A stretch of DNA of 64,000 nt. Origin: Histomonas meleagridis 2922-C6/04-290x (taxonomy: Eukaryota; Protista; Parabasalia). The stretch is taken from the NCBI GenBank assembly GCA_020184695.1, contig JAANOX010000253.1:248001-312000 (forward strand), given 5' to 3'. The notes under the pieces were generated by a model that had not been told where the DNA came from, did no database searches, and saw nothing but the letters and a program-made list of their open reading frames with translations. A program made the translations under genes and the position numbers. Shown here in pieces: positions 7,194 through 45,413 of the stretch (within the stretch, counting starts at the first letter, position 1; each line of letters begins with the position of its first letter).

Positions 7194-7714
7194 TTTGGAA
7201 AAAGTGCTTATAAAGTAACCGTTTCTATCGTTTTATGAGGCACACCAAAACACAAGAAACAAAAAATGTTTACAATTGGTTTCTCCTGCACCCTTGTATA
7301 GGGTGCATTTTGCTTAGTGTTTGCATTAATATAAATGAAAAGTATAAAATCATAGAATCATCGTTAAAATGAGGTACATATGAAAACTGTTGGAATTTCA
7401 AACGTTCTCCGATAACGTTCCTTTTTAAGTCAAAATTTTATTTTTATGTGTGGTGTATACATAAAATATTTTGGTTTAAGACTAATTTTCCAAAACCTTT
7501 CTCATACTATTTCGAGTTGACAAGTTTTGCATCAAAAATTTGAGATAATATTAAAAATGTTTTGGTGAAATTTGAAGAAAATATCAAAGTGATCCCGTTG
7601 ACACTTTTTAGACCGAAATCTTCTTCAGTCAAAATTCAAAGACTTAAACGAACTTTTATTGGTAATTGCATTGAATTTTTTTGCTTTTTGAGAGGGCAAA
7701 AGTGGCATTGAGGA

Positions 7715-8647
7715 ATGGGTGGCTTGTTTAGCTCTAGCAAAAGATCGCTTCCCGAATTATATGTTGACATAGTAAATGCTGAACCTAAGTCCGAAAGCGA
7801 AAAGCAATTGTACGATGATTTTCAAAACAATATATTTGTTCCCGCACAAGATAAATTCCAACGTTTCTCTGCTTACCAAGATGGACAGCAGCTTGCAGCA
7901 GAATCTCTTAATCATCCATCGCCAGAATCCAAAGAAGCTGCATGGGAAGCTATATATCCCAACATTCAATTACAAATGGAAATGTTCAAATTTGCTAAAT
8001 CAGTTTCCAAGAAGTTTTCTGAGCTCCTTGAAACTGTTACTAATTTGGTACATGATAAGACAATTGATGTTTTTGTGGATATGCCAATTGCCATCAAATG
8101 TTTTGTGAATTGTTTTGACATTATCTTAACCTTTGATGAAATCAAACTTCGTCTTCCTAAGCTTCTTAACGACCTTGCTTTCTTTAGAAGAAATGCGCCA
8201 TCGCGCAACCAAGGTGATTTAGATGATATAATACATGATTCAAATACATCCACTATTTTTTGGGCCGCTCCAACTCCAATGCTTTCTGATGTCATTAATA
8301 CACTCCAAGCTACGTACACACCAGCATCCGAAGCTCATGCTAAAATTTTAGATGTAATTGGGTGTGTTAGTGATGTTTGCACTAATATCCTCAAGAACCA
8401 CAGATTCGATGATGAACAGCCTAATAAACTCTGCTTAAGGTGCATTGTCGGATCGACATTGATATACGATCACCTTTCTCCAACTGGAGCCTTCACATCT
8501 AAAACAAAGTTCCACGTCAAAGAAGCAATGGAACTTTTAGTAGGATTTGAACCAAAGCAGGTTAGTCTCATCAATGCTATTAAATATTCTTCAAAGAATT
8601 TGGATAAAGATGGAGCAGATCCTAAAATCACTAACCTGTTCAAATAA
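7715..8647 (+). CDS. CYRI/FAM49 family Rac1-binding protein
   Basis: MG start (myristoylation-like); LTFDEIKLRLPKLLNDLAFFRR resembles the FAM49 LxFDELKM..P.IQNDFSYYRR motif; CLRCIVGSTLIYDHLSPTGAF C-terminal block. Confidence 0.85.
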   Translation: MGGLFSSSKRSLPELYVDIVNAEPKSESEKQLYDDFQNNIFVPAQDKFQRFSAYQDGQQLAAESLNHPSPESKEAAWEAIYPNIQLQMEMFKFAKSVSKKFSELLETVTNLVHDKTIDVFVDMPIAIKCFVNCFDIILTFDEIKLRLPKLLNDLAFFRRNAPSRNQGDLDDIIHDSNTSTIFWAAPTPMLSDVINTLQATYTPASEAHAKILDVIGCVSDVCTNILKNHRFDDEQPNKLCLRCIVGSTLIYDHLSPTGAFTSKTKFHVKEAMELLVGFEPKQVSLINAIKYSSKNLDKDGADPKITNLFK

Positions 8648-19991: not shown

Positions 19992-20175
19992 TTCGAAAAA
20001 GTAATTTTTTTTAAGATTATTTATGCAATTAAATCTTAAATTTTTTTTTCATATTAATAGTTAACTATTCTCAGTGTTATGTTACAAACACATTTGGCTA
20101 AATGCATTGTGCACCTATAGAAAGAAATTCTTTTCCAAAAAAAATTTTTTAGCTAATGGAAGACGTTTAGAATAT

Positions 20176-22611
20176 ATGAAAGATGCTTTTCATCAATTAT
20201 TAACAGCATTTACTTTATCAGACCAGAATGCAATTTGTCAATCAGAGGAAGTAATTAAAGGCAATGCAAAAAATGAAAATTTTGGTCGCTTTTTAATAGA
20301 TTTCATATATGATTCAGATACGCCACCTAATTTTAAATTATTGACATTAATTATTTATGACCGATTTGATGTTGTTCCATTTTCTGATATAATACCTAGA
20401 TTAATTCCAATGCTATCATCTAATTTAGAACAATTTAGATTCTATAGTGCCAAATTAATTGGGAAATTTCTGACCAAAGAAGAAGAAATTCAAAACATAT
20501 TTCAGCTACCACAAGAATATATACAATCCATTTTAATCATAATCACATCATTTTATGATACTCAAAAAAAAGGAATTCTCACGATATCAATGATTCAGTA
20601 CCTTATATCAATCATCAACTCACCATTACCATATAATATTAAAGTTGATGCAGCAATTTGTATGAATCATTGTTTTCCCAAAATTGAAGAAAATCTTGTA
20701 GAAATATTCAGTAATTCCATCCCATTTCAAAATATCTTTACTCAACCAGTTACACCGGAAAATATTTTATTTTTAACCAAATTTTTCCGCTTTTGTTACA
20801 AAACTGTTTCCAAGGCCGATAGCTATCGTATTTGTATTTTTTATCTTTCACAAACATGTGAACATTTATTAAATGATTCATTTCCAGAAATAGATTTACT
20901 ATTTAATTTTATTAGTAAATTAGCATTACGTGTTGAACATTTGCTTGATATTGGATTTAAAGAATTTGATGTTTCCGAATTAGCAAGGATATTAGTATTA
21001 AATTGTATTTTAACAAATCAGCAAATTATTTCATGGAAAAATAATATCGAATTATTTATCAATGATAATTTTGTTGATGATGAATATTGCGATGATGATG
21101 ACAGTGATCATTTACCACAAAAAATTTGTTTAAAAATTTTACAAAAAAATTATTATTTAGTTGATGAAACAATAAACTTTTGTTGTTCGATTGTAAATTT
21201 ATCACCGAAACATCAAGAAGTTGCATTTAATATTATATCCAATATATTACCGAAAGATCATATTTATGATTTATATTTTCCATTAACTTTTCCGGATCCT
21301 ATAATTATTGGTCGATATATGACTTGCACATCAATACTTAATAAAGAAATCGATATTGATTTAATTGAAGGATCATTAAATTCCGATAATTTCATATTAC
21401 CTATTTTTGTAGCTGATGTTATAACTGATACTAAATCTGATAAATATGATAAATATCTTTTACCAACATTTAATAAGTTATGCTCCATGATAACAATGTT
21501 TGAGACTGATTCTCTTCAATATTTTATTAATATTTTAGAACATTTAATAGCTCATAATCCTTTAGAATTTATTAATGTATATCCTGAAATAATACAATTT
21601 TTCTTAAATATAATTCCAACATTTTATGGTTATCCTTCAATTAGAATTGTAATAATTGAGTTAATTACATTATTTATTAAAATTCCTCAAGCAATTATAA
21701 TAATACAACAAATTTGTTTTCCATTTATTTCAATGTTTTTAAATTCTCTTGAGTTATGTGAAAGTGGATTTGATTTGTTGGAAGGTATTCTAATTGGTAA
21801 TGAACCACCGATATTAATTGAAGAAACAAATCAAATATTTAAATCTTTTTATAATATAATAAACGTATATCCATTATTTAGAGAAACTTCAAAATCTGTT
21901 TTTAATCTTGTTGCTTATTTTACAAGAAATATAATCGAATCAAGAATACCATTATTAAAATGGTATATTTTATGTTTAAGTGATGTAAGTATTGATAGTT
22001 CCTTGTTTAATTATATGACAACTGTTGTAATTCATTTCGTACTTAATTGTAATGAAGGAATTGTAAATCTATTAAATTCACTTTATTCAAGAATCCGATT
22101 TTATGAATCGATATCTTATGCAGTTAATTTTGTCGTGACAATATCTTCATTGATTTTATTAAATAAAGAAAAGGCAATAAGTCTTATCGAGGAATCAGGA
22201 ATAGGTTTTAATAACGTTTTAAATCATATTGGTAATGTGAGTAATATAATTGGCGATATGAACTTTTTCGAACAAAAAATTTTATTAGCTGCAATGATGT
22301 CTTTGGGTTCAATTAAAGTTAATTTCGATGATGATGAAAAAATGTTAAGTGAAATAGCAATTGTATATTTAAATTTAATGATTTCTCCATATTTGGGTGA
22401 TGATATAAAAATAGATAATTTCGATGAGTTTTTGTTGTTGAAAGAAGAAAATAATGATGATAACCCAATTAATTCTTTCTTCATAGGTGACCCATTTTAT
22501 TTGGATCATCCATTGAAGAATATGAGCTTTTCGAATTTTGTGAAAATGTTTTTCCCGGTGATACCTGAAATATTACAATATAACTTAAATCGATTGTATA
22601 ATAAAGAATAA
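20176..22611 (+). CDS. Divergent importin-beta-like HEAT-repeat protein
   Basis: Long helical ORF with an importin-like N-terminus and acidic loop (FINDNFVDDEYCDDDDSD); ATG at 20176. Confidence 0.55.
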   Translation: MKDAFHQLLTAFTLSDQNAICQSEEVIKGNAKNENFGRFLIDFIYDSDTPPNFKLLTLIIYDRFDVVPFSDIIPRLIPMLSSNLEQFRFYSAKLIGKFLTKEEEIQNIFQLPQEYIQSILIIITSFYDTQKKGILTISMIQYLISIINSPLPYNIKVDAAICMNHCFPKIEENLVEIFSNSIPFQNIFTQPVTPENILFLTKFFRFCYKTVSKADSYRICIFYLSQTCEHLLNDSFPEIDLLFNFISKLALRVEHLLDIGFKEFDVSELARILVLNCILTNQQIISWKNNIELFINDNFVDDEYCDDDDSDHLPQKICLKILQKNYYLVDETINFCCSIVNLSPKHQEVAFNIISNILPKDHIYDLYFPLTFPDPIIIGRYMTCTSILNKEIDIDLIEGSLNSDNFILPIFVADVITDTKSDKYDKYLLPTFNKLCSMITMFETDSLQYFINILEHLIAHNPLEFINVYPEIIQFFLNIIPTFYGYPSIRIVIIELITLFIKIPQAIIIIQQICFPFISMFLNSLELCESGFDLLEGILIGNEPPILIEETNQIFKSFYNIINVYPLFRETSKSVFNLVAYFTRNIIESRIPLLKWYILCLSDVSIDSSLFNYMTTVVIHFVLNCNEGIVNLLNSLYSRIRFYESISYAVNFVVTISSLILLNKEKAISLIEESGIGFNNVLNHIGNVSNIIGDMNFFEQKILLAAMMSLGSIKVNFDDDEKMLSEIAIVYLNLMISPYLGDDIKIDNFDEFLLLKEENNDDNPINSFFIGDPFYLDHPLKNMSFSNFVKMFFPVIPEILQYNLNRLYNKE

Positions 22612-25307: not shown

Positions 25308-28300
25308 TTAATTAATATTATTTTCTTCATGTTTAAGAAGTAAATTAACAATTTCTGTATAACCATTTTCAGATGCTCTCATAAGTGCTGTCTTAAATGT
25401 TTTGAATAATTTCCAAATATTATTTTGAAATATTAAATTATTAAAATAAATTTTATATAAAACAAATAAATATTTTTCACATTGATATCAATTCCTTTTT
25501 GTGCAAGAAGTAATTTAACTATTTCTGTACAGCCTTTTTCAGATGCATTAATAAGTGCTGTTTTATATAATTTAAATAATTTCCAAATATTATTTTGAAA
25601 TTAAAAATTATTAAAATAAATTTTATATAAGAAAAATAAATATTTTTAGCATTGATATCAATTCCTTCTTGTTCAAGAAGTAATTTAATTACATCTGTTT
25701 GACAATTCCACGATGCTTCAATCAGTGCTGTATTAAATATTTAAAATGATTATCAAATATTAATTTGAATTTCCGAATATATTTAAAAAATATTAAATAA
25801 AACATATAAATATCTTTATTATTAATATCAATTCCTTTTTGTTCAAGAAGTAATTTAACTATTTCAGTATGACCATTTCTAGATGCAATATTAAGTATTG
25901 TATCAAATAATTTTAATAATTTCCATATATTATTTTGAAATTATAAATTATTAAAATAAATATTATATAAAACTTATAAATATTTTTATCATTAATATCA
26001 ATTCCTTTTTGTTTAAGAAGTAACTTAATGATTTCTGTACAGCCTTTTTCAGATGCCAACATAAATGCTGTCCAAAATAATTTGAAAAATTTCCAAATAT
26101 TATTTTAATATTTTAAAATATTAAAACAATTATAAAACAAAAAAAATAAATATCTTTATTATTGATATCAATTCCTTTTTGTTCAAGAAGTAATTTAACT
26201 ATTCCTATATTACCATTTTTAGATGCAATTATAAGTGCTGTATTAAAAAATAAAAATTATTTTTAAATATTATTTAAAAATATCAAATTAGTAAAATAAA
26301 TTGAAAATAAGAAATATATATATTTTTAGCATTGATATCAATTCCTTTTTGTTCAAGAAGTAATTTAACTATTCCTATATTACCATTTATAGATGCACAA
26401 ATAAGTGCTGTATTAAAAAAATTTGATAATTGTTAAATATTATTTTGATATATTAATTTATGAAAAAAAATATTGAATAAAATGAATAAATATCCTTTGC
26501 ATTAATATCAATTCCTTCTTGTTCAAGAAGTATTTTAACTATTTCTGTATTACTTTTTGAAGATGCATACATAAGTGCTGTTTTAAATAATTTAAACAAT
26601 TTCCGAATATTATTTTGAAATCTCAAATTAGTAAAATAAATTGAAAATAAGAAATATATATATTTTTAGCATTGATATCAATTCCTTTTTGTTCAAGAAG
26701 TAATTTAACTATTCCTATATTACCATTTATAGATGCACAAATAAGTGCTGTATTAAAAAAATTTGATAATTGTTAAATATTATTTTGAAATATAAAATTA
26801 TTAAAATTAATATTAAATAAAACAAATAAATATCTTTAGCATTAATATCAATTCCTTTTTGTTCAAGAAGTAATTTAACTATTTCTGTATTACTTTTTGA
26901 AGATGCATACATAAGTGCTGTTTTAAATAATTTAAATAATTACCGAATATTATTTTGAAATAAGAAAAAATTATAAAAATAAATTTTAAATAGAATAAAT
27001 AAATATCTTTAGCATTAATAACAATTCCTTTTTGTTCAAGAAGTAATTTAACTATATCTGTATTACCTTCTTCAGATGCAAATATAAGAGCTGTAGTAAA
27101 TATTTTAAACATTTTCCAAATATTATTTTGAAATTTTAAATTATTAAAATAAATTTTAAATAAAACAAATAAATATTTTTCACATTGATATCAATTCCTT
27201 TTTGTTCAAGAAGTAATTTAACTATTTCTGTATTACCTTCTTCATATGCAATAATAAGTGCTGTTTGAAATAATTTAAATAATTTCCATATATTATTTTG
27301 AAATATCAGATTATTAAAATAAATTTTAAATAAAACAAATAAATATCTTTAGCATTAATATCAATTCCTTCTTGTTCAAGAAGTAATTTAACAATATCTA
27401 TATGAAATTTTTTAGATGCCAATATAAGTGATGTATCAAGTATTTTAAATAATTACCAAATATTATTTTTAAATATCAAATCATTAAAATGAATTTTAAA
27501 TAAAACAAATAAATATCTTTGGAATTAATATTAATTCCTTTTTGCTCAAGAAGAAATTCAACTATTTCAATAAAGCCTTTTTTGGATGCATTTAAAAGAA
27601 CTTTAAAAATTTTGATAAAACATCAAATATTTTTTAGGATCTTTTAATTATTTTAATAAATATTATTTAAAAATATTAAACCTTTTCATGAATTGAATCA
27701 ATATATCCATTTTTTTTAATGTAATCCAATATTTCTTTGTTACCTGAAAACGTTTTTATAGAATTTAAATTTATTTTTATTCGATTTTTTGTTAAAAAAT
27801 ATTGAAAAAGGAATAAATCACCACTTTCTATTGATTGAATGACAAGTGAATCGCTGATTTTCATACCTTCTTCTACAAAAAAGGAAAGAAGTTCATAATT
27901 ATGAAATAAAACACATTTCTTTCCTAATTCTTCAAAGTTATCAATTTTTCCAATATTATTTTCATAAAGATATCGGAAAAGATCATTTCGATGAAATTCA
28001 ATTGCTGCTTCATATGCATTTTCAAATGTTGATTGATTTTGTTCACATAAATGAATGATTTCTTCGTTTCCACCTGCAACTGCATATTTGCCTGTATTTT
28101 CTATATTAGAATCATTCATGAGTAAATATTTGAAACATTTAACAGAAGTAAAAAATGCTGCATAATCAATTAATGAAACATCTTTTTGATTGATAAATGA
28201 ACATCTTTCATATAATGATGGTTCAATTGTTTGATTAAAATCGAAGTTTGTTTCTGATGATATTTCTTGAAGTTTTTCTATTTCATCATTTCGAATTATA

Positions 28301-28899
28301 TTTGCAATTTCATTTGGATTATGTCCTTCTTCTATTAATTTCTTATGAAGTTCCCAATCATTCTCTGATAATTCGATATATTTTTTAATGATACTGTTCC
28401 ACATTAATATTAAATTATCATTTATAGAGGAATCGAAGTATTTGTTAGTTAATCTATTTATTTCACAATCTGACATACGGTGAATAAAATATGGAGTTTT
28501 TATGTTTTTACAAATACTGAAATCAAAAAAGTTATTTTCGATCATTTTTTCTATAAGATAATATGATTCTTGCGTTTTTTTATATAATAAATATTTTATA
28601 AACATTTTTATTACGTTGTTGTTCTTTTTAAAAATTTCATTTTCTTTCTTTTCAAGTTCTTGTAAATATTTAATATATATTTTATGATGTAAACATTTTG
28701 TCTTAAAATGCATATATAAAATACTACAAATAATAAAATTAGATGAATGTGAAAATTCTTCATTAAAATATTTTAAAGACAATTCAACTGTTTCATTAAT
28801 GTTATCTTCATTCAAATCAAAAATAACCTTTTTAATGTGTTGTAATATTTGAAGGTTTTGTGCGTATTTCTTTTTAGTGCCACTTTGGTTTGATCCCAT
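25308..28899 (-). CDS. DUF3447/ankyrin-repeat gene A, interrupted by 14 non-canonical spacers
   Basis: N-terminal part 28899-27682 (YAAFFTSVKCFKYL, YAVAGGNEEIIHLCEQ) followed by 14 stop-free ankyrin modules (TAL..AS..G.TEIVKLLLEQKGIDINAKD), each preceded by an 80/83-nt spacer. Final module ends ...KHEENNIN-TAA at 25310-25308. About 865-880 aa if spacers are removed. Confidence 0.8.
25392..27681 (-). repeat. 170-nt tandem array: 90-nt ankyrin module plus 80-nt spacer (14 spacers)
   Basis: Spacers at 27602-27681, 27435-27514, 27265-27344, 27095-27174, 26922-27004 (83 nt), 26752-26831, 26582-26661, 26412-26491, 26242-26321, 26072-26151, 25902-25981, 25732-25811, 25562-25641, 25392-25471. Confidence 0.93.
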
Positions 28900-29202
28900 T
28901 AGTCAGATTTGACTAAAAAAAGTGACATGTGGCCAAGAGATTCGAATCTCTTCACATATTCCACATTAAATTCAAGGTAATTTTTCCTTGATAATATTTT
29001 GAATTGATTTTTTAAAGACATTTAAAATATATTAGACAATTAAATAATTTTGTATTTTGTTACTATGTAAATCAACAAATTTTGAGCTTTAAAAAAGTGG
29101 CACTTTGAGGTACCCCATGGCAATAAGGAACCGTTTATTAATATGGTTTGTAGAATACGTTAAAATCGCTTTTGAGAACGTTTATTTAAATCTGAAAGAA
29201 AG

Positions 29203-30042
29203 ATGTCCATAATCGACTCTCGCCCTGGTCCGCACTTTTTTTCAATGCCATTACATAACTATAAAGGGAAAATTCCATTTATTATTACAAACTTGATTAA
29301 CAGACTCGAAGAAAGAAATGCAGATCAACAAGAAGGGATATTTCGGTTAAGTGGACGAAAATCAGAAGTTGATAGGATATGCACTTTCATGGATAGGGCG
29401 CCTGTTACGGATTGGACCCAATTTGAAGACATGGATAATAATGTTATCGCCTGCGCACTTAAAAAATACCTACAAAATTTATCAAGTTTCGATCCCCTTA
29501 TTGGCAAAGACATCTCTGATGAGGTCAATTCTACTATTCAATTGTTTTCTGAAGATCCAACAATATATTCTCGACTTAAAAACCTTCTTGAGCACTCCCC
29601 TCTCACCCGACGAAATGCTCTTGCCTATGTTATGCATTATCTTAAAAAAATTGCCGATAACTCCGGGGTTAATAACATGAATTCTTATAATTTATCTGTT
29701 TGTTTTACACTAGCAATTTTCCCACAGACAGACACAATTGCTAGCGGTAACTCCATGAAAGCGTTTGAGCTCTTTATCAATGATTTTGAACAAATTTTTG
29801 ATCCATCTTGGTATGATGCAGCAAACATACTAACACCAGGTGATATCGAAAAACTCTCTGCGCCAATCATTGATATCAGTGACGCCAAGAATGAACAGAT
29901 GAGAAGAATGGTAAAAAAGTCATCTTTGATACCATATGATCGATCGATGCTTAGTACATTTTTCTTAATAGAACGACCAAATAGGCCACCACCGTCACCG
30001 CCACATTCACCGTCACAATCTCCCGCAGTAATACCGGAATAA
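29203..30042 (+). CDS. RhoGAP-domain protein
   Basis: QEGIFRLSG arginine finger, IACALKKYL, NNMNSYNLSVCF; Pro-rich tail. Confidence 0.93.
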   Translation: MSIIDSRPGPHFFSMPLHNYKGKIPFIITNLINRLEERNADQQEGIFRLSGRKSEVDRICTFMDRAPVTDWTQFEDMDNNVIACALKKYLQNLSSFDPLIGKDISDEVNSTIQLFSEDPTIYSRLKNLLEHSPLTRRNALAYVMHYLKKIADNSGVNNMNSYNLSVCFTLAIFPQTDTIASGNSMKAFELFINDFEQIFDPSWYDAANILTPGDIEKLSAPIIDISDAKNEQMRRMVKKSSLIPYDRSMLSTFFLIERPNRPPPSPPHSPSQSPAVIPE

Positions 30043-30206
30043 ACGCTATGTTTTATTAAATGTGATTTCAAATACACATAATTTGTAAAATAAAATTGGA
30101 TAAAGGCTTTCAAATTGTTGATTCTTAAATATTCTTTTAGAGAAAATAAGAAAAAGAAAAAAGTTCTTGCTGAAATGAAATACAAGAAAAATAACGTATT
30201 TTACAA

Positions 30207-30938
30207 ATGCCACCAAAAAGAGTTATAAAAGTGGTGCGCAAAAAAACACCAGTTGAACGAACACCCCGTATCCCTACAAAGCAAAAAGTAATTATATTAC
30301 GACGCGTAAAAGATGGTGAAGAATATGTTCATAGAGAAGAGATTCCTGCATCAATAGGACTACCAGAATATTACTCAGAAATGGAAGAAGCTAACAAAGA
30401 AATAAATGAACAAACAGAAAGATTTGATGGGAAAACAATTATTTTTTTAATTGGCGAACCAGGAAGTGGTAAAAGAACACAATCAGAAAAAATTGTCAAT
30501 GAATATAATATGGGCTACATTGATGCAGCTGAGCTGCTTCATTATGATTCAGAAGATCAAGAATCTGAAGAAACATATGTAAATATATTAAAGGAAGAAA
30601 TCATTTCTCAAAACAAAAACTCTTACGTCATTAGCGGATTTCCTATGAACATTGAACAAGCAGAAGAATTTGAAAAAATTGTTTGTGATATTACATTTGT
30701 TATATTTCTTGATGTTCCAACCGAATTTCTTTTTGAAAGCCTCTTAAAGCAAGACCCTGAATTTGCAGAAAAAAGTGAGTATGATGAAATTCGACTTGAG
30801 ATCCAATCACTTCATGAGGAATTAGAACAAGTTTTCGATCATTTCAACTCACTTGGGAAAGCTGCAAAAATTGATGGAAATCGAGAACCTGACGAAGTTT
30901 TTAGAAATATCCAAAATTTTATTCAAGAAATTGTATAA
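30207..30938 (+). CDS. Adenylate/UMP-CMP kinase-like protein (divergent)
   Basis: IFLIGEPGSGKRTQSEKI P-loop, YVISGFP, IDGNREPDEVF. Confidence 0.8.
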   Translation: MPPKRVIKVVRKKTPVERTPRIPTKQKVIILRRVKDGEEYVHREEIPASIGLPEYYSEMEEANKEINEQTERFDGKTIIFLIGEPGSGKRTQSEKIVNEYNMGYIDAAELLHYDSEDQESEETYVNILKEEIISQNKNSYVISGFPMNIEQAEEFEKIVCDITFVIFLDVPTEFLFESLLKQDPEFAEKSEYDEIRLEIQSLHEELEQVFDHFNSLGKAAKIDGNREPDEVFRNIQNFIQEIV

Positions 30939-31076
30939 ATTATTAGAAGCTATTCACGATATAAATAAAATTATTTATTATTTTATCATTTCCACAATTC
31001 TTTAATGAAATTTTTTTTTAATAACATTCATATAAATTATATTTATCTCAAATTAATAAAATATGTTATATCTTTA

Positions 31077-32501
31077 TTATTGTTCTTTATAATAATTCTC
31101 TTTTATACGATCAACTGTTTCAACAAAGTTTGGATTAAACCCAACTTCATCTAAAAAGTTAATAACGCTATTACCAAAGAAATATGTTTCCCTATAATTG
31201 AACGAGCACTTTTTCAATAAACATTTGAATGTTTGAATTGCCTTTTCAATTGTTATCTCTTGCGAAGACAACAAAATATCAATAAATAGATCCCAAAACT
31301 GATTTGGGAACAAATTTCCGAGTTGTGCAGGATCAAGCCCATCCAAAATATGCAAAAACAAATAAGCGCAATGCTCATGTATGCTATTTGATTTCTCGAT
31401 ATTATCGAAAGTCATTTTTATGATATTTAAAACATGATCAACAGGAAAATTCGGTGGCAAAGCACCAAAAGCATCAATGTAATATGTTAAAAGTAGTAAT
31501 AATGATTCAAATGTTTTATCATCCATATTAGGATTAGATAACATTTGAATAATGAATGGTAAATCAATTTTACTAATTAATATTCTTTTATATTCAGTTA
31601 TTTCGGATAAAAGTAATTCCGTTATTATATCAAGTGATCGATAATTACAATAGTTATAAAGAGAATCCAAAATTTCATCAATTATTCCATATTTAAATAT
31701 TTTTTCTTCGATAATTTTTGGCTTTTCCCAAAAAATTCTTTTAAGTGTTTGTGAAGAAATATTTATAATTGTTTCATCGTTAAGTTTATAAAGTTGTTTT
31801 ATTAATGTTAATAATCTTTTTTGACTTAAAATTTCTTTTTTGAATCCAATTTGTATATAACTGGTATAAATTGTCAAAAGATCTTTAATTGTTCTTATAA
31901 ATGTATCTACATCATCTTGTGACTGAATTTCATTCATACGAAGTAAATAATAATTAAGATAATTTAATGAAAGTTCAATAATTGGCGAATTAAGAATGAA
32001 TTCGCGCATTTGGGGAAAGGTTGAAAGCATCCATATAAAATGATATGTATTATAAGAAAGTAATATATATTGGCTTTCTCCTTGAAGCAGTGGATTTGAT
32101 AGGATTTGATGCAAAATTTGAAGATATTCTGGTGGAAATTTCATCAGAACAGAATCTTTATAGTGAATAATTAAACGTGATAGAGTACCTATAGACTTGA
32201 CTTTAACAGGAATACTTCTCAATATTATTAATTGAAAGAGAAAAGTTATCAAATCTGAATCAAATGAATTTATAAATTCATATGTTGGTATTTGTCCTTT
32301 ATCGAATTCTATATTAATATTGCATAGAGAGTCATATAATGCTTGCTCATTTTGTTTAGAATTTGTAAGAGTATCAATTAGAAACACCCATTTATGATGA
32401 CATTGTTCTTGTTCCTCAATAGATTCCTCAGCTAATGCAATGTCTTCGTGTAATGTTTTTTTCTTTTTTTTATTTATTGTCTTTGCTTTAAAATTTAACA
32501 T
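31077..32501 (-). CDS. Hypothetical helical-repeat protein
   Basis: 474-aa Leu/Ile-rich ORF; no specific family recognised. Confidence 0.65.
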   Translation of the reverse strand: MLNFKAKTINKKKKKTLHEDIALAEESIEEQEQCHHKWVFLIDTLTNSKQNEQALYDSLCNINIEFDKGQIPTYEFINSFDSDLITFLFQLIILRSIPVKVKSIGTLSRLIIHYKDSVLMKFPPEYLQILHQILSNPLLQGESQYILLSYNTYHFIWMLSTFPQMREFILNSPIIELSLNYLNYYLLRMNEIQSQDDVDTFIRTIKDLLTIYTSYIQIGFKKEILSQKRLLTLIKQLYKLNDETIINISSQTLKRIFWEKPKIIEEKIFKYGIIDEILDSLYNYCNYRSLDIITELLLSEITEYKRILISKIDLPFIIQMLSNPNMDDKTFESLLLLLTYYIDAFGALPPNFPVDHVLNIIKMTFDNIEKSNSIHEHCAYLFLHILDGLDPAQLGNLFPNQFWDLFIDILLSSQEITIEKAIQTFKCLLKKCSFNYRETYFFGNSVINFLDEVGFNPNFVETVDRIKENYYKEQ

Positions 32502-32946
32502 TTACCAAAGATTTTGGCCGCCGAATTTGGGGTGCACCAGTACAATCATGTATGGAATAAACGGCTTCCTTTTCTTTCTTTTCGTCACAAAAAAAAATTC
32601 AACATTTTAACTTTAACATTATTTGATAAAAAAGAAACCAAAATATTCTACTATGATAAAAATATTTCAATATTTTAAGAATTTCGAAAAAAATCAATAA
32701 ATTTGAGATTTCAAATTTTTTAAAAATAAAACACAAAATTATATTTATTAATGTACCTCTGTAGCATCAAAAAAATTGGCTTGTTTTTATTAAGGATAAT
32801 GTTCATTTTTTGAGAGTTACATTTTTTTCGCTTACATTACTCTTAACACACAAATGAACATCCGAACTATGACAATTTTAACATTTTTTTTTAATGATTT
32901 TAAATTTTATTAAGGAAAACATTTAAAATTTTTACTTACATAACAA

Positions 32947-34947
32947 TCAGTAATTATTGCCGAACTTATCGAATTCCTTATCCTCATAGTAGTCATCATT
33001 TTCGTTGTACACCTGCACCTTTCCCATTGATTTCCTTCTCCACAAACCAATGATTGGTGTTAATATTCCTCCTATTACGAAGAATATCACGCCCATTAAC
33101 CAATAAGCCATTCCGTCAGTGAAGTGTACGCATAAACCATTTTTTATTGGTGAGTAAATACATTTAAATTCGGTACATTTGATAGAGTTAAATCCATCAT
33201 TGACAATAACTTTAGCCTTATCTATTAATTCATTACCTATTCCAACAACTTTATTTTTGGTTGTATCAATAGTAACTATAACATCATTGACATAATTTGT
33301 TACAACTTTCATTTTCTCACCAGTTTTAGTTAAGTCTTCATCATGTTTATCAATCGATTTATCTAAATTATTAAGTTGTATAAGTGTTTCTTCATCATCT
33401 TTATATTTAATACGTAATTTATCAGTGTTTTCTTCATGTTGAAATATAATGTTATTACTTGTGAAAACTTTACTCCAAATATTACCTTCACTAAAATTAC
33501 GTAATTGTTGTAACGTATGTGAAAATGTACTTAAGTCAAAGGCATCAGTCATTTGTATGACAACTTCATCAAGTCCATTTAATACTGATTGATAATCAAA
33601 TAATCGTTCAAGGCCCATTTCGAAAATTGGTCTTTCGACTTCGCATACTAACATTGAAGTAAAATTATTACTTGGAATTCCAGTTGCATTACCTGCAATG
33701 TTACCTAATGTTACATCTAATGATTGACAATTATCATTTAAGACAAAGAATAATAACCCAAATATTGCACCGGGTATAACAATAAAGATATCTAATAATA
33801 TCCCAATTAATGAAAATCGTCCCATTATACATCGTGAAAAACAATTGTTACAAAAGAAAAAGATGAAAAATATGATCGAAAATAATATAATGAAAATGGT
33901 GGCAACAATTGAAACTAATGAGATATATGGCTTAGCAATATGAATATAGTGGACAAATGTGCTCACATAGCCTTGTAACGTCGAATTGATGTCATAAATT
34001 CCATTTATTTCAGATGAAATACTTTTTTCATATTTCGATATCTCATTTTGGGCTGATTGAATATTGTCAGTAATGGTCGTTTGCGCTTCTTTAGAGATCT
34101 TCGTAAGGTCCCCGGCATTGTCAGTGAGTTTACGTGTGATTTCTTTGATGCCTGGTGCTGTTACGGTTAAACTTGTATCAATAAAATTAAGATCAGAAAT
34201 ACTTTGCTTTTTTTCGAAGTAGCCGCGGACTGCTTTGTAATCTGGCTCAATTGTGGGAGAGTTTGACTTGAAATAATTGGTATAAGTATCAAGATAATCA
34301 CTGACGGCAGATGCCACATTGGAAACTGTGGATGCTTGAATAAGTATGTTGACAAGAGTGCTTAAGTTTTTGTCAATTTGTACTAATGAATAATTTATGA
34401 GATTAAAACTATTGTCGGAAATTGAATTTGCGGCATTGGCAACGGTTTCAATGGTATTCGAAATGTGCGTAGGCTCTGAAGTAAACTCGTTAAGACCTTT
34501 GAGGATGGAAACAACAGCTATAAATGTTAAAATTGCAGAAACAATTAGTAAAACAACAGAAATTAAAAGAAAGAAAACTTGCATACATGTTTGCTTTTTG
34601 CTGTTTTTTGGCCTACAGCAACAACATGATACACAATTCAGAATAATGTAGTATAGAAGCATTAATACAAAAAGTACAAGAAGTACAACTGCAAAACCAG
34701 CTTTTCCATACAAATATGGCATGAGATCATCAGAGTTGAAATTTGATAAGTCAATCGAGTCAACTGTGGGAAAACCTATAATTCTTGCAATTGATAATGA
34801 AGGTGTACCGATTTTTATTATTGAATCTTGGAGAGGACCCGGTGTTGCAAACGAACATCTTTCCTCACTTCGAGCATTGCTCCAAAAGAGGAACAGAAAG
34901 CTACAAAAAAGCATTGAACGCACGTTACGTAAACTTTTGTTTAACAC
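32947..34947 (-). CDS. Prominin-like five-TM glycoprotein
   Basis: Signal peptide, TM1, Cys-rich loop (CVSCCCCRP), TM2, large loop, TM3, CNNCFSRC, TM4, large loop, C..IY.PI..GLC...W, TM5; this is prominin topology. Confidence 0.7.
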   Translation of the reverse strand: MLNKSLRNVRSMLFCSFLFLFWSNARSEERCSFATPGPLQDSIIKIGTPSLSIARIIGFPTVDSIDLSNFNSDDLMPYLYGKAGFAVVLLVLFVLMLLYYIILNCVSCCCCRPKNSKKQTCMQVFFLLISVVLLIVSAILTFIAVVSILKGLNEFTSEPTHISNTIETVANAANSISDNSFNLINYSLVQIDKNLSTLVNILIQASTVSNVASAVSDYLDTYTNYFKSNSPTIEPDYKAVRGYFEKKQSISDLNFIDTSLTVTAPGIKEITRKLTDNAGDLTKISKEAQTTITDNIQSAQNEISKYEKSISSEINGIYDINSTLQGYVSTFVHYIHIAKPYISLVSIVATIFIILFSIIFFIFFFCNNCFSRCIMGRFSLIGILLDIFIVIPGAIFGLLFFVLNDNCQSLDVTLGNIAGNATGIPSNNFTSMLVCEVERPIFEMGLERLFDYQSVLNGLDEVVIQMTDAFDLSTFSHTLQQLRNFSEGNIWSKVFTSNNIIFQHEENTDKLRIKYKDDEETLIQLNNLDKSIDKHDEDLTKTGEKMKVVTNYVNDVIVTIDTTKNKVVGIGNELIDKAKVIVNDGFNSIKCTEFKCIYSPIKNGLCVHFTDGMAYWLMGVIFFVIGGILTPIIGLWRRKSMGKVQVYNENDDYYEDKEFDKFGNNY

Positions 34948-35398
34948 TTACGTTCTATCAAAAACTTGATCCTCAGCCAATTTATTTGGTGACAGAAAAT
35001 TTTCAAAAGTATTATATAGTTTACATGAACATAAAAAATTCAAAAAGCTGTTTGTTAAATTTTCGGTGAAAAGTTTCTAACTTGTTTTATTTCTTGTCTA
35101 CCAAAAAAAATTGATATCAAAACTGTAGAAATTGTTATTAAGTATGCTTTAATTGTTGATTTCAAAATAAAAATTAAATATAAGATAATTGAAAAGAAAA
35201 AAATAAAATTTTATCCGAATGGTTAATATCAAATATTTCTTTATAAAACTTATATCATAACATTTATTATGCTGATTATAAATTTTGCATTTAAATAAAA
35301 ATTAATCCTTTCGATTGATAGGTTAATCACACATTTTAATTGTTATTTTGGGGCACCCTTTGACTAAATTATAATTAATTTTCACTTTTCCTCAGACA

Positions 35399-38300
35399 AT
35401 GGGAACAAACCAAGAACAATCTGAAATTAATTATATACAATCAATTCACCAAATCATATTTAATCTAGAAAATGAAAATATTGAATCATCAGTCCAAACA
35501 ACAATGCAATACTTTGATCAATCAACCCCGATATCATTTAATTATATCATATGTCATTGCATTTACTCATCTTTTGTGTCCCAAATCAAGGATACAATGA
35601 TATATATTAATTATTTAAAAGCACTTGAAACAAAAGAGGAACATATTTTAAATAAAAATCCACAAATTTTTAATATTTTTGAGCAATATTTAAAGACCAA
35701 AAATATATATACTGGAGAATCAAATTATCTTCTTGCAGAACTTAAAGAAGCCGGATTAATAAAAATGGATTTTTTTATTCATGGATATGATATGAATTTA
35801 TTTAAAATTCTTAAGGAGAAAAACTTTGAAGAAGCAAAAAGATATATTAACAAAAAATATTCAAATAATAATCGAAACTTTATAGAAATCCCATCAGATA
35901 TATCTATTATAATTCAAAATGATGATGTGGAAAAGCTCCAAGAAATTGCATCACAACCAAACTTTGATTATAATCAAAATATCAAACAATATGTATATGA
36001 GAAAGGAATTGTTAATGATGGAAATACTTCATTAATTAATTATAGTGCATTTTATGGATCAATCAAATGTTTCAAATTTTTAATGTTAAATGGTAGTAAT
36101 TTAACAGATGTAGGGAAATATGCAGTTGCAGGAGGAAATATAGAAATGGTTCATCTTTGTGAAAAAAATATCATAAAAATTAAAGAATTATTTGAAGTAG
36201 CAATAGAATTCACTCGAAATGATATCTTTCATTATCTATATGATAAAAATCCAGAAGAGATAAATGAAAATAACTTAAATGATTTATGTATAATATGTAT
36301 TCAATCTGATAATTATGAAATTTTCTCATTTTTGATTGAAAAAGGACTTAAAATTAATAATAAAGTTATCTCAGCAATAATCACATGTGGAAATTTATAT
36401 ATATTAAAGTATGCTATAAAAGGAAAAGAATTCCCGAAAGAATCTTTAATAAATTCCGTCATTTCCAAAAATATAGAACTTGTTGAATATATTCTAAAAC
36501 AAAATGTGATTGATATTAATGAGAAAGATATATATTTATTTTATATGAGATTTATTTTAATAATTTTATATTTCAAAATAATATTTGGAAATTATTTTAA
36601 ATATTTCAAACAGCACTTATGATAGCATCTCAAAAAGGTGATATAGAAATAGTTCAATTACTTCTTGAACAAGAAGGAATTGATATTAATGCTAAAGATA
36701 TTTAATTGTTTTATTTAAAATTTATTTTAATAATTTAATATTTCAAAATAATATTTGGAATTTATTCAAAATATATTACACAGCACTTATAAGATCATCT
36801 GAAAATAATAATATAGAAATAGTTAAATTGCTTCTTGAACAAAAAGGTATCGATATCAATGCTAAAGAAGTTTATTTAATATATAAGGTGTTTATTTTAG
36901 TGTTATCTAATATCAATATAATATTTGGGATTTTTTAATATTGTATAGAACAGCTTTAATCTTTGCAGTAACAAAAGGTATCGAACTTGTTAAATTACTT
37001 ATTAATAAAGGAATCGATATTAATGCTGTGGATATTTATTTATTTTATAATTAATTTTTTTAGATAATATAATATTTCCTTAAAATATTTCATGTTTTTT
37101 CATTATAATTCAAACAGCTATATCAGTATCTTTATCAACAAATCAAATCAACGTATTTAAATTACTTCTTGAGCAAAAAGGAATAAATCTAAATGATAAA
37201 AACGCTTATTTTATTTATTTAAAGTCTATTTAACAAATATTCAATTTCAATATAATATTTGGAAATTGCTTTAATTTTTTCAAACAATACTAATGGATGC
37301 TTTATCTCATATTAAAATTAATAAGACTGAATTTAATAAAAAAGAAATTGTTAAATTGCTTCTTAAAAATAAAGGAATTGATGTCAACATTAAAGATTTT
37401 TATTGTTTTTAATTAATGTTTATTTCATTGTTATAATAATTGAAAATATTTTTTGGAATATATAAAAATTAATTCATACAGCTCTTTATTATGGAATGGG
37501 AGCTACAAATGAAAAAATTGAAATCTTTAAGGAATTTCTTGAAAGTAATAAATTTGATATATATGCTAAAGATAATGTTTATATCAATAATTTGATATTT
37601 CATATTAATATTTGGATATTTTAACTAATATATGAAACACCATTTATGTATGCATCAAGAAATGGTTATACGGAAATAGTTAAGTTACTTCTTGAAAATG
37701 CGAAAATTGATTTAAATGAAAAAGATATTTCTTGAATTCACATAATGATTTTATAAATAATTTAAAATTTCTTCATAAAATATGGTTTTCATTCAAATGA
37801 TTTAAAACAGCACTTATTTTAGCATGTGAATATGGCAAAACGGAAATGGTCAAATTACTTCTTGAACAAGAAGGAATTGATATCAATGCACAAGATATTT
37901 TTTTATTTTATTTAAATATATTTTTATTAATTTGAATTTTATTTATAAAATATGGAATTTATACAAATAATTTAAAACAGTTTTAATGTATGCAACATTT
38001 TGTAAAAAAGAAATAGTAACATTACTTCTTAAACAAGAAGGAATTGATATTAATGCTAAAGATGTAAATTTATTTTGTTTAATGTATATTTTAATAATTT
38101 AATGATTTAAAATATTATATGGAAATCATTAAAAATATTTGAAACAGCACTAATGTATGCATTTCAAGATGATAAATTCAGAATGATTATATTTTCAAGT
38201 GATGTTAAAAAACTACGTATCGAAATATTACAATTACTCCTTCAACAAAAAGATATTGATGTAAATGCTAAAGATATTTTTTTATTAAATTTAAAATTTA

Positions 38301-38616
38301 TATTAATAATTTTCTGTTTTAATATATTATTTGGTAATTATTTAAATGATTTCAAACAGCACTTATCAAAGCATCTAAAATTGGAAAAAAAGATGTTGTT
38401 AAAATTCTTCTAAAACAAAAAGGAATTGATATTAACGCACAAGACAATCAAGAAATGACTGCAATATTAAGGGCTTCCGAATATAATAAAAATGATGTGG
38501 TTAAACTTCTTAAAAGACAAAAGGGAATTAAATACAATGAAGATAAACTTAATGAAGTTCGCAAGGTAAATCCAATGAACTATGGATTTGGCTTTGGTTT
38601 TAATAAAGGCTTTTAA
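35399..38616 (+). CDS. DUF3447/ankyrin-repeat gene B, interrupted by 11 non-canonical spacers
   Basis: N-terminal part 35399-36529 is paralogous to gene A (MGTNQ vs MGSNQ; YSAFYGSIKCFKFL; YAVAGGN). Then 11 stop-free ankyrin modules; the last contains an uninterrupted repeat (INAQD-NQEM-TAIL) and ends ...GFNKGF-TAA at 38616. About 817-828 aa if spacers are removed. Confidence 0.8.
36530..38355 (+). repeat. Ankyrin module plus spacer array (11 spacers)
   Basis: Spacers at 36530-36609, 36700-36779, 36870-36949, 37034-37113, 37204-37283, 37398-37477, 37574-37636 (63 nt), 37727-37806, 37897-37976, 38064-38143, 38276-38355. Confidence 0.92.
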
Positions 38617-39832: not shown

Positions 39833-41733
39833 AAAGTTTCACAAGGAACTTTGTTGTGACAGCCCTGCCAACGAATTGTCTGATAAGGAAAGTGACAGTT
39901 GATTAAAACAATAATAATCATTCACAACTTGATATTTCGGAGAACAAAACAGAAATTTTATTGAACAAATTTATTTTTTGATGGCATTAAACCATTAAAA
40001 ATCATTTTAAAAAATAATATTTTTGATTAAATATTTTTGATTAAATATTTTTTATTTATTTTTTATTTTTTATTTTCTCGTGTTGTTTTACATGGACCTG
40101 TCCATTCAGTTTCAAAGAATAAGAATTCTTTATTATCATCAATTTCTTCATTCCGATTAACAATTGTTGGTGGAACTTTATCTGCCAACCAAAGTGATGT
40201 TTTCCCAATTTTATGGAATGGGATATTAGACATAATTTTTTTGGGAACTTATCCATCATCGTAGTAATATTAACATCTGTAATTTGTGCCAATTCATTAA
40301 ATCCTTGAACAATTATCGCTGCCACAAAGTATGCTAACCACGTTTGCGGACATGGCGAACAATTTAATTGTAACCAAACTGACCAAATGTCACTAAATGA
40401 TCGTTTAAATAATAAAACAAAATCGGAATAACACCATAAAAGTTCTTTAAGTGAATTACGTCGCATCCAAATAGCTGCAAGTGGTGATACTTTACAAATA
40501 ATTTGAAAAATAGTTTCTGCTTGTTTTTTACATTGTTCTGTAACATTAGCTAATAATTTAAAAATGCTAATAATATTGGAACAAATAAATCATTCATACC
40601 TTGAAGATATCCAATCGGTGGATTAAATATACAATATGTACGTAATAGTTGTGTAACCATTTTAAGTCCTTCTGCATCATTATCTTTAAATGCTAATAAT
40701 TGGCGATCGGTACGACTAACATCATGTTTAATAACTCGAAATGCAGATGAAATTCGTTTATTATTATTAATTTGATCGGGTGTAAGTTTTTCAACTTGAT
40801 TAACTAATTGTTTATATTCTTTACTTAATTCTTTATCAAGTTTTTCTCGTTCAATAGTAGTACTATTAGATGGATAAACTCCAAATGCAAATGGTAATGC
40901 TTTATTTAATATTTCAGTATCAATACCTGCATGAAATAAACGTAATTTAAATTCTTCAAAATTTTTAATTCGTCCTTCTTCATCAAATAAATTACCCCAT
41001 TCTTCACTCGTAATTTTTTGATATTCTTGCCCAATATGATCTGAATATTCATCAATTTCTTCTAAAATTCGTTTATGATTAGCTCGTGCTGCTTCAGCTA
41101 ATGGAAATTGTGGATCTCGTGGTAATGTATCACTATTATCTAAATGAATAATTAACGTTAAAAAGAAACTATGTAAACAATCCCAAAATTTTTTAAGATC
41201 TTCTGGAAAATTTTTTGTAGAAGGTTCTGATGAAGTATCAAAACCTAATTGAATATGTGGTGGTGTATATGGATAAACTCCTCGATGACATCGTTTATAA
41301 AATTGTAATGAATATGATTTATCTGCTGATGGAACTGCAATACCATTAATTAAAAGTTGTTCAACTAACTCTGTAACTGAGATAAATTCCATCGGTTCAT
41401 ATGAAAATCGTCGTTCTTCACCTTCATTATATCCATAAATTGTTAATGAAAAATCTTCATGAAGTTGTAAAAGTTTAATATGAACACACTCTTGTTTAAA
41501 ACTTTTGTTAAATTCCCATGATTCTTCTGATTCTGTATTTTGTGTTTGTTGCATAACTGCTAAATGATGCATAGGTGAACCACTAATGGGTGTCCAACTA
41601 ATCATAAAAATTTCATCAAAACGTGATAAAACTAACGTACCATTAGATCCTCCTGTTTGTCCATTGGTTTTATCAATGGTTGGTTCAATAGTACAAAGTT
41701 GAAATCGCCTTGCTCCACCTGCAAAAGTCATCT
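39833..41733 (-). repeat. Left arm of ~1.9-kb inverted duplication
   Basis: Reverse complement of 43591-45413; identity ends at AAAGTTTC (39833) and at -2 from the ATG (41733). Confidence 0.95.
40056..41731 (-). pseudogene. TBC-domain Rab-GAP (TBC1D15/17-like), copy 1, disrupted
   Basis: IKHDVSRTDR and GYLQGMNDL TBC motifs; 393-aa ORF ends at a ~121-nt deletion (40550-40560); +2 A in a homopolymer near 40236-40242. Confidence 0.85.
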
Positions 41734-43590: not shown

Positions 43591-45413
43591 AGATGACTTT
43601 TGCAGGTGGAGCAAGGCGATTTCAACTTTGTACTATTGAACCAACCATTGATAAAACCAATGGACAAACAGGAGGATCTAATGGTACGTTAGTTTTATCA
43701 CGTTTTGATGAAATTTTTATGATTAGTTGGACACCCATTAGTGGTTCACCTATGCATCACTTAGCAGTCATGCAACAAACACAAAATACAGACTCAGAAG
43801 AAGCATGGGCATTTAACAACAGCTTTAAACAAGAGTGTGTTCATATTAAACTTTTTACAACTTCATGAAGATTTTTCATTAACAATTTATGGATATAATG
43901 AAGGTGAAGAACGACGATTTTCATATGAACCGATGGAATTTATCTCAGTTACAGAGTTAGTTGAACAACTTTTAATTAATGGTATTGCAGTTCCATCAGC
44001 AGATAAATCATATTCATTACAATTTTATAAACGATGTCATCGAGGAGTTTATCCATATACACCACCACATATTCAATTAGGTTTTGATACTTCATCAGAA
44101 CCTTCTACAAAAAATTTTCCAGAAGATCTTAAAAAATTTTTGGGATTGTTTACATAGTTTCTTTTTAACGTTAATTATTCATTTAGATAATAGTGATACA
44201 TTACCACGAGATCCACAATTTCCATTAGCTGAAGCAGCACGAGCTAATCATAAACGAATTTTAGAAGAAATTGATGAATATTCAGATCATATTGGGCAAG
44301 AATATCAAAAAATTACGAGTGAAGAATGGGGTAATTTATTTGATGAAGAAGGACGAATTAAAAATTTTGAAGAATTTAAATTACGTTTATTTCATGCAGG
44401 TATTGATACTGAAATATCGATCGCCAATTATTAGCATTTAAAGATAATGATGCAGAAGGACTTAAAATGGTTACACAACTATTACGTACATATTGTATAT
44501 TTAATCCACCGATTGGATATCTTCAAGGTATGAATGATTTATTTGTTCCAATATTATTAGCATTTTTACCACGTTGGGATGAAAAAGGATATCCAATTAA
44601 TGAAAATAATGAACGTATTGAATATGAAGAATATTATCCATCAATTTTTTGGTGTTTTGATGCTATGTTACATAATATTGATCATTTAAAATTATTAGCT
44701 AATGTTACAGAACAATGTAAAAAACAAGCAGAAACTATTTTTCAAATTATTTGTAAAGTATCACCACTTGCAGCTATTTGGATGCGACGTAATTCACTTA
44801 AAGAACTTTTATGGTGTTATTCCGATTTTGTTTTTATTATTTAAACGATCATTTAGTGACATTTGGTCAGTTTGGTTACAATTAAATTGTTCGCCATGTC
44901 CGCAAACGTGGTTAGCATACTTTGTGGCAGCGATAATTGTTCAAGGATTTAATGAATTGGCACAAATTACAGATGTTAATATTACTACGATGATGGATAA
45001 GTTCCCAAAAATTATGTCTAATATCCCATTCCATAAAATTGGGAAAACATCACTTTGGTTGGCAGATAAAGTTCCACCAACAATTGTTAATCGGAATGAA
45101 GAAATTGATGATAATAAAGAATTCTTATTCTTTGAAACTGAATGGACAGGTCCATGTAAAACAACACGAGAAAATAAAAAATAAAAAATAAATAAAAAAT
45201 ATTTAATCAAAAATATTTAATCAAAAATATTATTTTTTAAAATGATTTTAATGGTTTAATGCCATCAAAAAATAAATTTGTTCAATAAAATTTCTGTTTT
45301 GTTCTCCGAAATATCAAGTTGTGAATGATTATTATTGTTTTAATCAACTGTCACTTTCCTTATCAGACAATTCGTTGGCAGGGCTGTCACAACAAAGTTC
45401 CTTGTGAAACTTT
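43591..45413 (+). repeat. Right arm of inverted duplication
   Basis: Near-identical reverse complement of 39833-41733. Confidence 0.95.
43593..45184 (+). pseudogene. TBC-domain Rab-GAP, copy 2, disrupted
   Basis: Same protein split over five ORFs by three +1 T homopolymer insertions (~43852, ~44140, ~44833) and a 199-nt deletion at 44417/44418. Confidence 0.85.

Follow-up and report, generated by a model that had tools for sequence, protein, structure and literature searches.

What are the inserts that break the reading frame of two ankyrin genes in the poultry pathogen Histomonas meleagridis, and how could protein be made across them? The genes lie in a stretch of 64,000 nucleotides (nt) of strain 2922-C6/04-290x (GenBank assembly GCA_020184695.1, contig JAANOX010000253.1, positions 248,001 to 312,000, forward strand), hereafter the window, in whose own numbering positions are given. 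An earlier note, made from the sequence of the window, had described two paralogous DUF3447-ankyrin genes on opposite strands with 25 spacers in their repeats, and re-reading together with a scripted dissection confirmed this description. We conclude, with a probability of about 0.8, that both genes are intact and expressed, that the codons of the ankyrin turn form separate 3-nt exons, each after a 17-nt intron, and that these introns are spliced one at a time, probably by the spliceosome.

Two ankyrin genes with interrupted repeats

Ankyrin gene 1 occupies positions 25308-28899 of the minus strand and comprises an N-terminal DUF3447 domain and 15 repeats with 14 spacers, while ankyrin gene 2 (35399-38616, plus strand) comprises an N-terminal DUF3447/Ank part (35399-36529) and 12 repeats with 11 spacers. 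The N-terminal domain is stop-free in both genes over about 375-400 amino acids (aa), and the N-terminal parts matched Pfam families PF12796 and PF11929, the latter with a score that in gene 2 fell under the curated cut-off. Each spacer separates the D/N/E codon from the T codon of TAL. Only the final repeat of gene 2 (D-NQEM-T) lacks an interruption, in agreement with the earlier count of all repeats but one. Twenty-three spacers measure 80 nt, one 83 nt (26922-27004) and one 63 nt (37574-37636). Stops in the flanking frames occur within the spacers, and all 25 modules are open. Tandem Repeats Finder detected a period of 170 nt, plus a sub-period of 20-22 nt within the spacers. After splicing in silico as described below, the products carry the Pfam domains, a tandem 33-34-aa repeat and a D-x-x-G-x-T-A-L turn in all repeats, as expected for the trichomonad family of ankyrin-repeat proteins with DUF3447.

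The second public assembly of H. meleagridis (GCA_020186115.1) is identical over 20.8 kb across both genes, bar one gap at the far end, and contigs of DNA runs include the spacers. The spacers are therefore real DNA and not an assembly error.

Spacers are missing from RNA contigs

We compared contigs assembled from RNA and DNA sequencing runs with the two genes. For gene 2, the share of 31-mers present was 0.53-0.58 in RNA runs, equal to the expectation for exons only, against 0.94-0.95 in DNA runs. For the array of gene 1 it was 0.28-0.31 in RNA runs, where exons only would give 60/170 = 0.35, against 0.76-0.79 in DNA runs. In three RNA runs, contigs matching gene 2 with zero mismatches jumped all the spacers that they covered, one of them spanning four consecutive exons (36885-37577), whereas the contigs of DNA runs read through. 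A few of the 31-mers of the locus were present in chicken-gut metagenomes.

At each jump the upstream piece of the alignment stopped at or just past the D/N codon, the downstream piece began 2-4 nt ahead of the T codon, and between the two the contig had 7-10 unplaced letters. These ends and counts indicate that in the mRNA the D codon is separated from the T codon by 12 nt, with 68 nt missing. The unplaced letters are neither the start nor the end of the spacer, since the alignments would then have run on. The proposal that the modules are functional coding sequence, from which 3n+2 nt must be skipped at each spacer, was supported. Because the contigs and the 31-mer shares match spacer-free RNA, they rule out the translational bypass that had also been proposed; minus-one frameshifting via partly open frames was rejected on the same RNA evidence.

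Each spacer divides into 17-nt introns and single codons

As 68 is 4 x 17, we tried the partition 80 = 4 x (17+3), for which the clue came from two loci (L001 and L002, described below) that are poorer in A+T, share the arrangement of exons and spacers, and have spacers starting with GT. An 80-nt spacer then consists of four units of a 17-nt intron and a 3-nt exon, with 68 nt removed and 12 nt kept. The 63-nt spacer is an AAT codon followed by 3 x (17+3), and the 83-nt spacer has four 17-nt introns and a second micro-exon of 6 nt, so that its surplus 3 nt are exonic and not intronic. All 25 spacers could be split in this way, 14 of them into the 56 micro-introns of gene 1 and 11 into the 43 of gene 2. 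Every one of these 99 introns is exactly 17 nt long, which places them in the fixed-length ultrashort class (15-21 nt, with a spread of at most 1-2 nt).

None of the 100 retained codons is a stop, and they spell the x-x-G-x of the ankyrin turn D-x-x-G-x-T, restoring turns such as KD-KNGK-TAL, KD-KDGQ-TAL, KD-NNGE-TAL and KD-EYGQ-TAL. In the coding register none of 92 triplets is a stop, and most of the G+C of the spacers falls in it (72 G/C letters); one base earlier, 50 of the 92 triplets are stops. The stops reported earlier within the spacers consist of the last T of an intron and the first two bases of a codon. Spliced in silico, the reading frames stay open over 828 codons plus a stop in gene 2 and 879 codons plus a stop in gene 1.

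We compared the spliced products by phmmer with ankyrin arrays of related proteins that carry no interruptions, summing the top five bit scores. The 4 x 17 model gave 1299 and 1841 bits, and the next best, in which a core of 12 nt is kept, 1046 and 1529 bits. Full removal of the spacers gave 617 and 751 bits. The single cut of 71 nt (KD-I-F-K-TAL) favoured in the earlier note reached 731 and 1037 bits, and the alignment ends that it predicts were not seen, so that it had to be abandoned. Other candidates fell in the same way: single-intron models keeping the first or the last 12 nt, and models with two introns around a contiguous micro-exon of 9-12 nt at the TTTGGA core, all mismatched the ends of the RNA contigs and scored lower in homology.

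Between the units of gene 1, identity was 80% in the introns, 74% in the long exons and 51% in the micro-exon codons, the repeat being most variable there, and no insertion or deletion was found in the 99 low-complexity introns. As the introns outmatch the long exons in identity and carry no such length changes, both their sequence and their length are constrained, while the residues of the turn loop vary.

Predicted and observed ends of the RNA alignments

The partition predicts where each alignment should end, given that an alignment extends for as long as the bases match. We applied this rule to the junctions of gene 2, numbered J1 to J11 in the order of the spacers. Upstream ends were exact in six of six cases (J1, J4, J5, J6, J7 and J11) and downstream starts in seven of eight (J1, J3, J4, J6, J8, J10 and J11), J5 being one base off. 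The number of unplaced letters was also predicted correctly at J1, where the RNA pieces meet 36529 and 36607 with nine letters between them, at J4 (37033 and 37110, eight letters, in three runs), at J6 (37397 and 37475, nine letters) and at J11 (38276 and 38352, seven letters). Single ends fell as predicted at J3 (downstream piece from 36947), J7 (upstream piece to 37577) and J10 (downstream piece from 38141). At J8 an RNA contig begins at 37803, as predicted, with no upstream piece on gene 2, and this contig may derive from a paralogue. At the second spacer many contigs found in RNA runs only, paralogues among them, end at 36700, where the model places the end if the first codon is AAA. Five rival models missed the observed ends: those that retain the first or the last 12 nt, a core of 12 nt, the 3+6 nt of the 71-nt cut, or a 9-mer together with 3 nt.

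Two further contigs appeared to be partly spliced. One begins at 38292, in the spacer of J11, with eight unmatched letters ahead, a position that fits a form with intron 1 out and introns 2-4 in. The other retains introns 2-4 of the third spacer and ends at 36885, the point predicted for the form without intron 1. Depth was appreciable in the contigs retaining introns 2-4, at 15 (36885-36946) and 27.5 (38292-38352), where spliced forms reached about 50-120. The arrays may be spliced slowly or incompletely, or pre-mRNA may be present in the libraries.

Sequence features of the 17-nt introns

The 99 introns share the consensus RTTT-N9-ATTT (5' RTTTAT...) and contain about 6% G+C, against 26% in the micro-exons. 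Position 1 is A in 79, G in 15 and T in 5 introns; positions 2-4 are T in 73, 88 and 90, position 5 is A in 59 and C in 19, position 14 is A in 87, and positions 15-17 are T in 92, 77 and 92, respectively. A is also frequent at positions 9 and 11. The first two bases are AT in 59 introns, AA in 20, GT in 11 and GC in one, so that most introns of the window do not start with GT or GC. The last two are TT in 72, AT in 19 and TC in 4, and AG in none. Under the model mRNA, the placement of only one of the 99 introns can be slid to give GT-AG, GC-AG or AT-AC ends; placement is unique for 34, most commonly with the ends AT...TT.

Known signals were sought in the same set. The intron consensus does not match the 5' site GTAYGT of parabasalid introns, and the position weight matrix of the 99 introns shows neither the U12-type ATATCCTT 5' box nor a terminal AC. 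The ACTAACACACAG-like 3' motif of Trichomonas vaginalis introns had three matches in the window, where 2.8 were expected by chance, all of them outside both genes. RNA folding of four spacers was no better than that of shuffled sequences (z -0.19 to +1.25), and structure-guided excision was rejected as a candidate for these four spacers, which lack predicted structure. A scan of the rest of the window with the 17-mer matrix, which has poor specificity in such A+T-rich DNA, found no convincing tandem sets outside the two genes.

The layout recurs at another Histomonas locus and in relatives

The 4 x (17+3) layout was found again in all six spacers of a metagenomic scaffold (L001), in a second metagenomic relative (L005) and in a further locus of H. 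meleagridis (L002; GCA_020186115.1, WSYJ01000138.1, positions 7560-8130), with turns such as KSGK, KYGK, KDGL, HDGS and SLGV. All 34 introns in the partitioned spacers of these three loci measure 17 nt; 19 start with GT, 9 with AT and 3 with GC, and 30 end in TT. The earlier description of an intron-like element family outside the GT-AG rule was supported.

At L002, ankyrin exons go on downstream of an annotated protein (P0010, 'cask-interacting protein (caskin) 1,2'), with spacers of 63, 79, 40 and 80 nt. This annotation is truncated, since its reading frame runs into the first micro-intron and stops there. The 40-nt spacer parses as 17 nt, GGA, 17 nt and TCT. The best parse of the 63-nt spacer has 17-nt introns started by GT or AT in phase 1, with micro-exons of 2 and 4 nt, and a manual parse of the 79-nt spacer requires one intron of 16 or 19 nt. 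Spacer variants of two, three and four units (40, 60 and 80 nt) exist. A more distant, parabasalid-like ankyrin gene (L003, positions 1735-2250 of a Logan contig of SRR24951071, protein P0122) has GTTTT-started spacers of about 53 nt, 82 nt and shorter at the same position of the repeat, after uninterrupted repeats. These could not be divided into 17+3 units, as the first unit yields a stop, and intron length or layout may differ in that lineage. GT dominates in the relatives and at L002 and was for this reason probably the ancestral start; the A start is probably a tolerated variant that became frequent in this young, A+T-rich subfamily.

Mechanism of removal

A specialised spliceosomal reaction appears to be the most likely route. 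It is favoured because the introns of relatives mostly start with GT or GC and because uniform spliceosomal introns of 15-21 nt are known. A spliceosome adapted to ultrashort introns would recognise a 5' site resembling R-T-T-T-A-T and would choose the 3' cut by its distance (a 17-nt ruler) and by the T-run, with no need of AG. Removal would have to be stepwise, because a spliceosome cannot occupy neighbouring introns 3 nt apart, and the introns would be excised individually with the first intron first, since two contigs lack intron 1 yet keep introns 2-4. The four introns within one spacer resemble one another. The arrays may have arisen by tandem duplication of a 20-nt unit of intron and codon, each duplication adding one codon to the mRNA, and the 170-nt unit of repeat plus spacer would have been amplified afterwards.

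Several points weigh against this account. The attribution to the spliceosome is its weakest step, as the known geometry of the spliceosome is hard to square with exons of 3 nt lying between introns of 17 nt and with a 3' end that lacks AG. The RNA evidence consists of assembled contigs of runs from one study, whose label 'RNA?' is a guess, and assembled contigs lose minor forms. For the 12 retained letters, the number and the bases that extend the flanks are known from the contigs, and the middle letters come from periodicity and protein homology. At J5 the upstream piece ends at 37203, as predicted, while the downstream piece starts at 37282 instead of 37281; this suggests either that the fourth intron is shifted by +1 and still 17 nt long (37265-37281, turn KSGK), or a strain polymorphism at 37281. 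Such a shift preserves the 17 nt and, with no variation in intron length elsewhere, would fit a ruler. Finally, an intron-free DNA copy elsewhere in the genome could formally underlie the spacer-free contigs. Protein searches with the C-terminal piece, the N-terminal domain and a representative library returned only paralogues and relatives, none of which matched the spliced product in full.

The same four 17-nt excisions might instead be made by a dedicated, non-spliceosomal cut-and-ligate activity that reads the RTTT...ATTT ends or counts 17 nt, comparable to tRNA or HAC1/XBP1-type splicing. Such an activity would account for the lack of GT-AG ends and of a T. vaginalis-type branch and 3' motif, for the 3-nt exons, for the strictly fixed length and for the similar tetranucleotides at both intron ends. 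However, introns in the relatives and at the other Histomonas locus mostly start with GT or GC, a normal feature of 5' splice sites, uniform introns of 15-21 nt are spliceosomal in other lineages (PMC10245619), and neither a bulge-helix-bulge nor another stable structure was found in the folded spacers (z -0.19 to +1.25). We therefore regard it as unlikely.

If, on the other hand, each spacer were one intron, or two introns flanking a contiguous micro-exon of 9-12 nt at the TTTGGA core, a group of models that includes the 71-nt cut, the mRNA would hold ATATTTGGA-like contiguous letters. The ATATTTGGAAAT core is indeed stop-free and in frame with the upstream exon, and the net removal is 68 nt. 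But the predicted ends disagree with those observed at most junctions (for instance 36533 against 36529, and 38275 against 38276), a scan of all contiguous segments found no position consistent across junctions, and homology scores were lower. The variants of 63, 83, 40 and 60 nt, being multiples of 17 nt plus codons, would also go unexplained, which makes these models very improbable. That the spacers are kept in the mRNA and bypassed or frameshifted by the ribosome, or that the arrays are decaying pseudogenes, as junctions without GT-AG and the absence of a gene in the public annotation might suggest, is hardly credible with spacers missing from RNA contigs, exon-only 31-mer shares, 25 modules and 100 micro-exon codons all open, invariant intron length and a layout conserved in other species.

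A broader form of the micro-intron reading is possible but doubtful: Histomonas and its relatives might possess a distinct micro-intron system, AG-independent and measuring 17 nt, which would be a strongly re-tooled spliceosome or else a machinery of its own and would tolerate one-codon exons. If so, duplication or loss of a 20-nt unit would change the protein by exactly one codon, and skipping of a micro-exon would stay in frame. The system would then have a built-in means of varying, across a large ankyrin family, both the length and the sequence of the hairpin tips that contact ligands.

Comparison with known systems

Introns of mikrocytids, Stentor and chlorarachniophyte nucleomorphs have GT...AG ends, lie singly between exons of normal size and are dispersed among many genes. 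The Histomonas introns differ in their 3' T in place of AG, in a 5' base that is mostly A, in their sets of four separated by 3-nt exons and in being found, so far, in ankyrin turns only. They resemble these uniform ultrashort spliceosomal introns (16-17 nt in mikrocytids, 15-16 nt in heterotrich ciliates such as Stentor and 18-21 nt in chlorarachniophyte nucleomorphs) in near-minimal length, very narrow length spread and conserved sequence (PMC10245619). Within the same phylum, Parabasalia, T. vaginalis has type A introns of 56-196 nt and type B introns of 23-25 nt, 23 nt being the minimum, with about 63 active introns in the genome; they start with GT, and an (A/T)CTAAC branch motif is fused to ...ACAG (PMC12316389). 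Histomonas shares with T. vaginalis an intron-poor genome and a uniform class of very short introns, and differs in the length of 17 nt, the absence of the motif and the presence of 99 introns in two genes.

Animals and plants have micro-exons of 1-3 nt, and in recursive splicing 3' and 5' splice sites abut, implying stepwise removal. Those micro-exons are flanked by long canonical GT-AG introns, whereas four consecutive one-codon exons stand 17 nt apart in Histomonas. In U12-type introns the 3' site is picked largely by distance and non-AG ends are tolerated. AT-AC introns (U12-type, rarely U2-type) share the A at +1; the Histomonas introns lack the ATATCCTT box and the terminal AC, and their 17 nt could not accommodate a U12 branch site, which lies 10-20 nt before the 3' end. 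The non-conventional introns of euglenids also have non-GT-AG borders in nuclear protein-coding genes, but a stable stem joins their ends and their length varies, whereas the introns described here have a fixed length and no predicted structure. The bypass elements of T4 gene 60 and of Magnusiomyces mitochondria (byps) are likewise short frame-breaking inserts in coding sequence; they persist in mRNA, whereas the Histomonas inserts are missing from RNA contigs.

Full-text searches of the literature turned up nothing about introns of 17 nt, exons of a single codon or introns in ankyrin genes for Histomonas or any other parabasalid, nor could we find a report of four consecutive one-codon exons at a spacing of 17 nt. 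The AG dinucleotide closes nearly all known spliceosomal introns, AT-AC introns being the known exception. Four successive one-codon exons between 17-nt introns without a 3' AG would bear on the limits of splicing, and they open a direct test of 3' splice-site choice by distance alone and of introns spaced more closely than one spliceosome footprint. The genome paper of Histomonas reported at most one intron per gene (PMC8529796). Parabasalid genomes are considered intron-poor, yet the two genes analysed here would carry 99 introns. As both genes are uncalled and the paralogue P0010 stops in a micro-intron, the whole ankyrin gene family of this pathogen would be mis-annotated, and gene finders would need a 17+3 model. 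Duplication of an intron together with its codon also suggests a simple route to the tuning of loop length in repeat proteins.

Positions of the spacers

In gene 2 (plus strand) the first spacer lies at 36530-36609, with micro-exons at 36547-49 (GAG), 36567-69 (TAT), 36587-89 (GGA) and 36607-09 (CAA) giving the turn EYGQ. It is followed by 36700-36779 (micro-exons 36717-19, 36737-39, 36757-59 and 36777-79; KNGY), 36870-36949 (36887-89, 36907-09, 36927-29 and 36947-49; GLGR), 37034-37113 (37051-53, 37071-73, 37091-93 and 37111-13; LNHQ), 37204-37283 (37221-23, 37241-43, 37261-63 and 37281-83; KSGQ) and 37398-37477 (37415-17, 37435-37, 37455-57 and 37475-77; NNGH). The seventh, at 37577-37636, is preceded by the AAT codon at 37574-76 and has micro-exons at 37594-96, 37614-16 and 37634-36 (DGE). 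The remaining four lie at 37727-37806 (37744-46, 37764-66, 37784-86 and 37804-06; NKGK), 37897-37976 (37914-16, 37934-36, 37954-56 and 37974-76; KEGK, placed by the sequence model only), 38064-38143 (38081-83, 38101-03, 38121-23 and 38141-43; NNGE) and 38276-38355 (38293-95, 38313-15, 38333-35 and 38353-55; KSGQ).

The spacers of gene 1 (minus strand) were all placed by partition of the sequence. In the direction of transcription they lie at 27602-27681 (NKDK, the first intron starting with GT), 27435-27514 (KDGD), 27265-27344 (KDGQ), 27095-27174 (KKGT), 26922-27004 (the 83-nt spacer, with its second micro-exon TTTCTT at 26962-67; KFLGK), 26752-26831 (NYNN), 26582-26661 (SEGK), 26412-26491 (NNNN), 26242-26321 (SDKN), 26072-26151 (YKGW), 25902-25981 (NIGD), 25732-25811 (NGDN), 25562-25641 (KLGK) and 25392-25471 (KNGK).

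Genomic setting

The window has a G+C content of about 28%, falling to 17-24% inside both ankyrin genes, and is densely filled with long intron-free open reading frames (ORFs). Its seryl-tRNA synthetase matches the protein encoded on JAANOX010000253.1 of GCA_020184695.1 residue for residue, and the 28% G+C, the two assemblies and two DNA samples from 2021 agree with the genome paper of H. meleagridis (PMC8529796). Scans of the window for Rfam families and tRNA genes gave no match. A RhoGAP gene sits between the two ankyrin genes and has its counterpart on WSYJ01000152.1 of GCA_020186115.1. The public annotation of this sister assembly calls no gene over either ankyrin locus. The ORFs at 20074-22611 (plus strand; 845 aa) and 31077-32501 (minus strand; 474 aa) are likewise uncalled there, and the latter had no Pfam match. 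Further along the window, 40550-41731 (minus strand) and 43593-45184 (plus strand) hold one gene as an inverted duplicate, which appears from its IxxDxxR and YLQGMND-like motifs to encode a TBC/Rab-GAP protein. In the plus-strand copy the same protein is spread over at least five overlapping ORFs in differing frames, with a C-terminal extension relative to the minus-strand copy; either a pseudogene or a gene whose interruptions have gone unrecognised could explain this.

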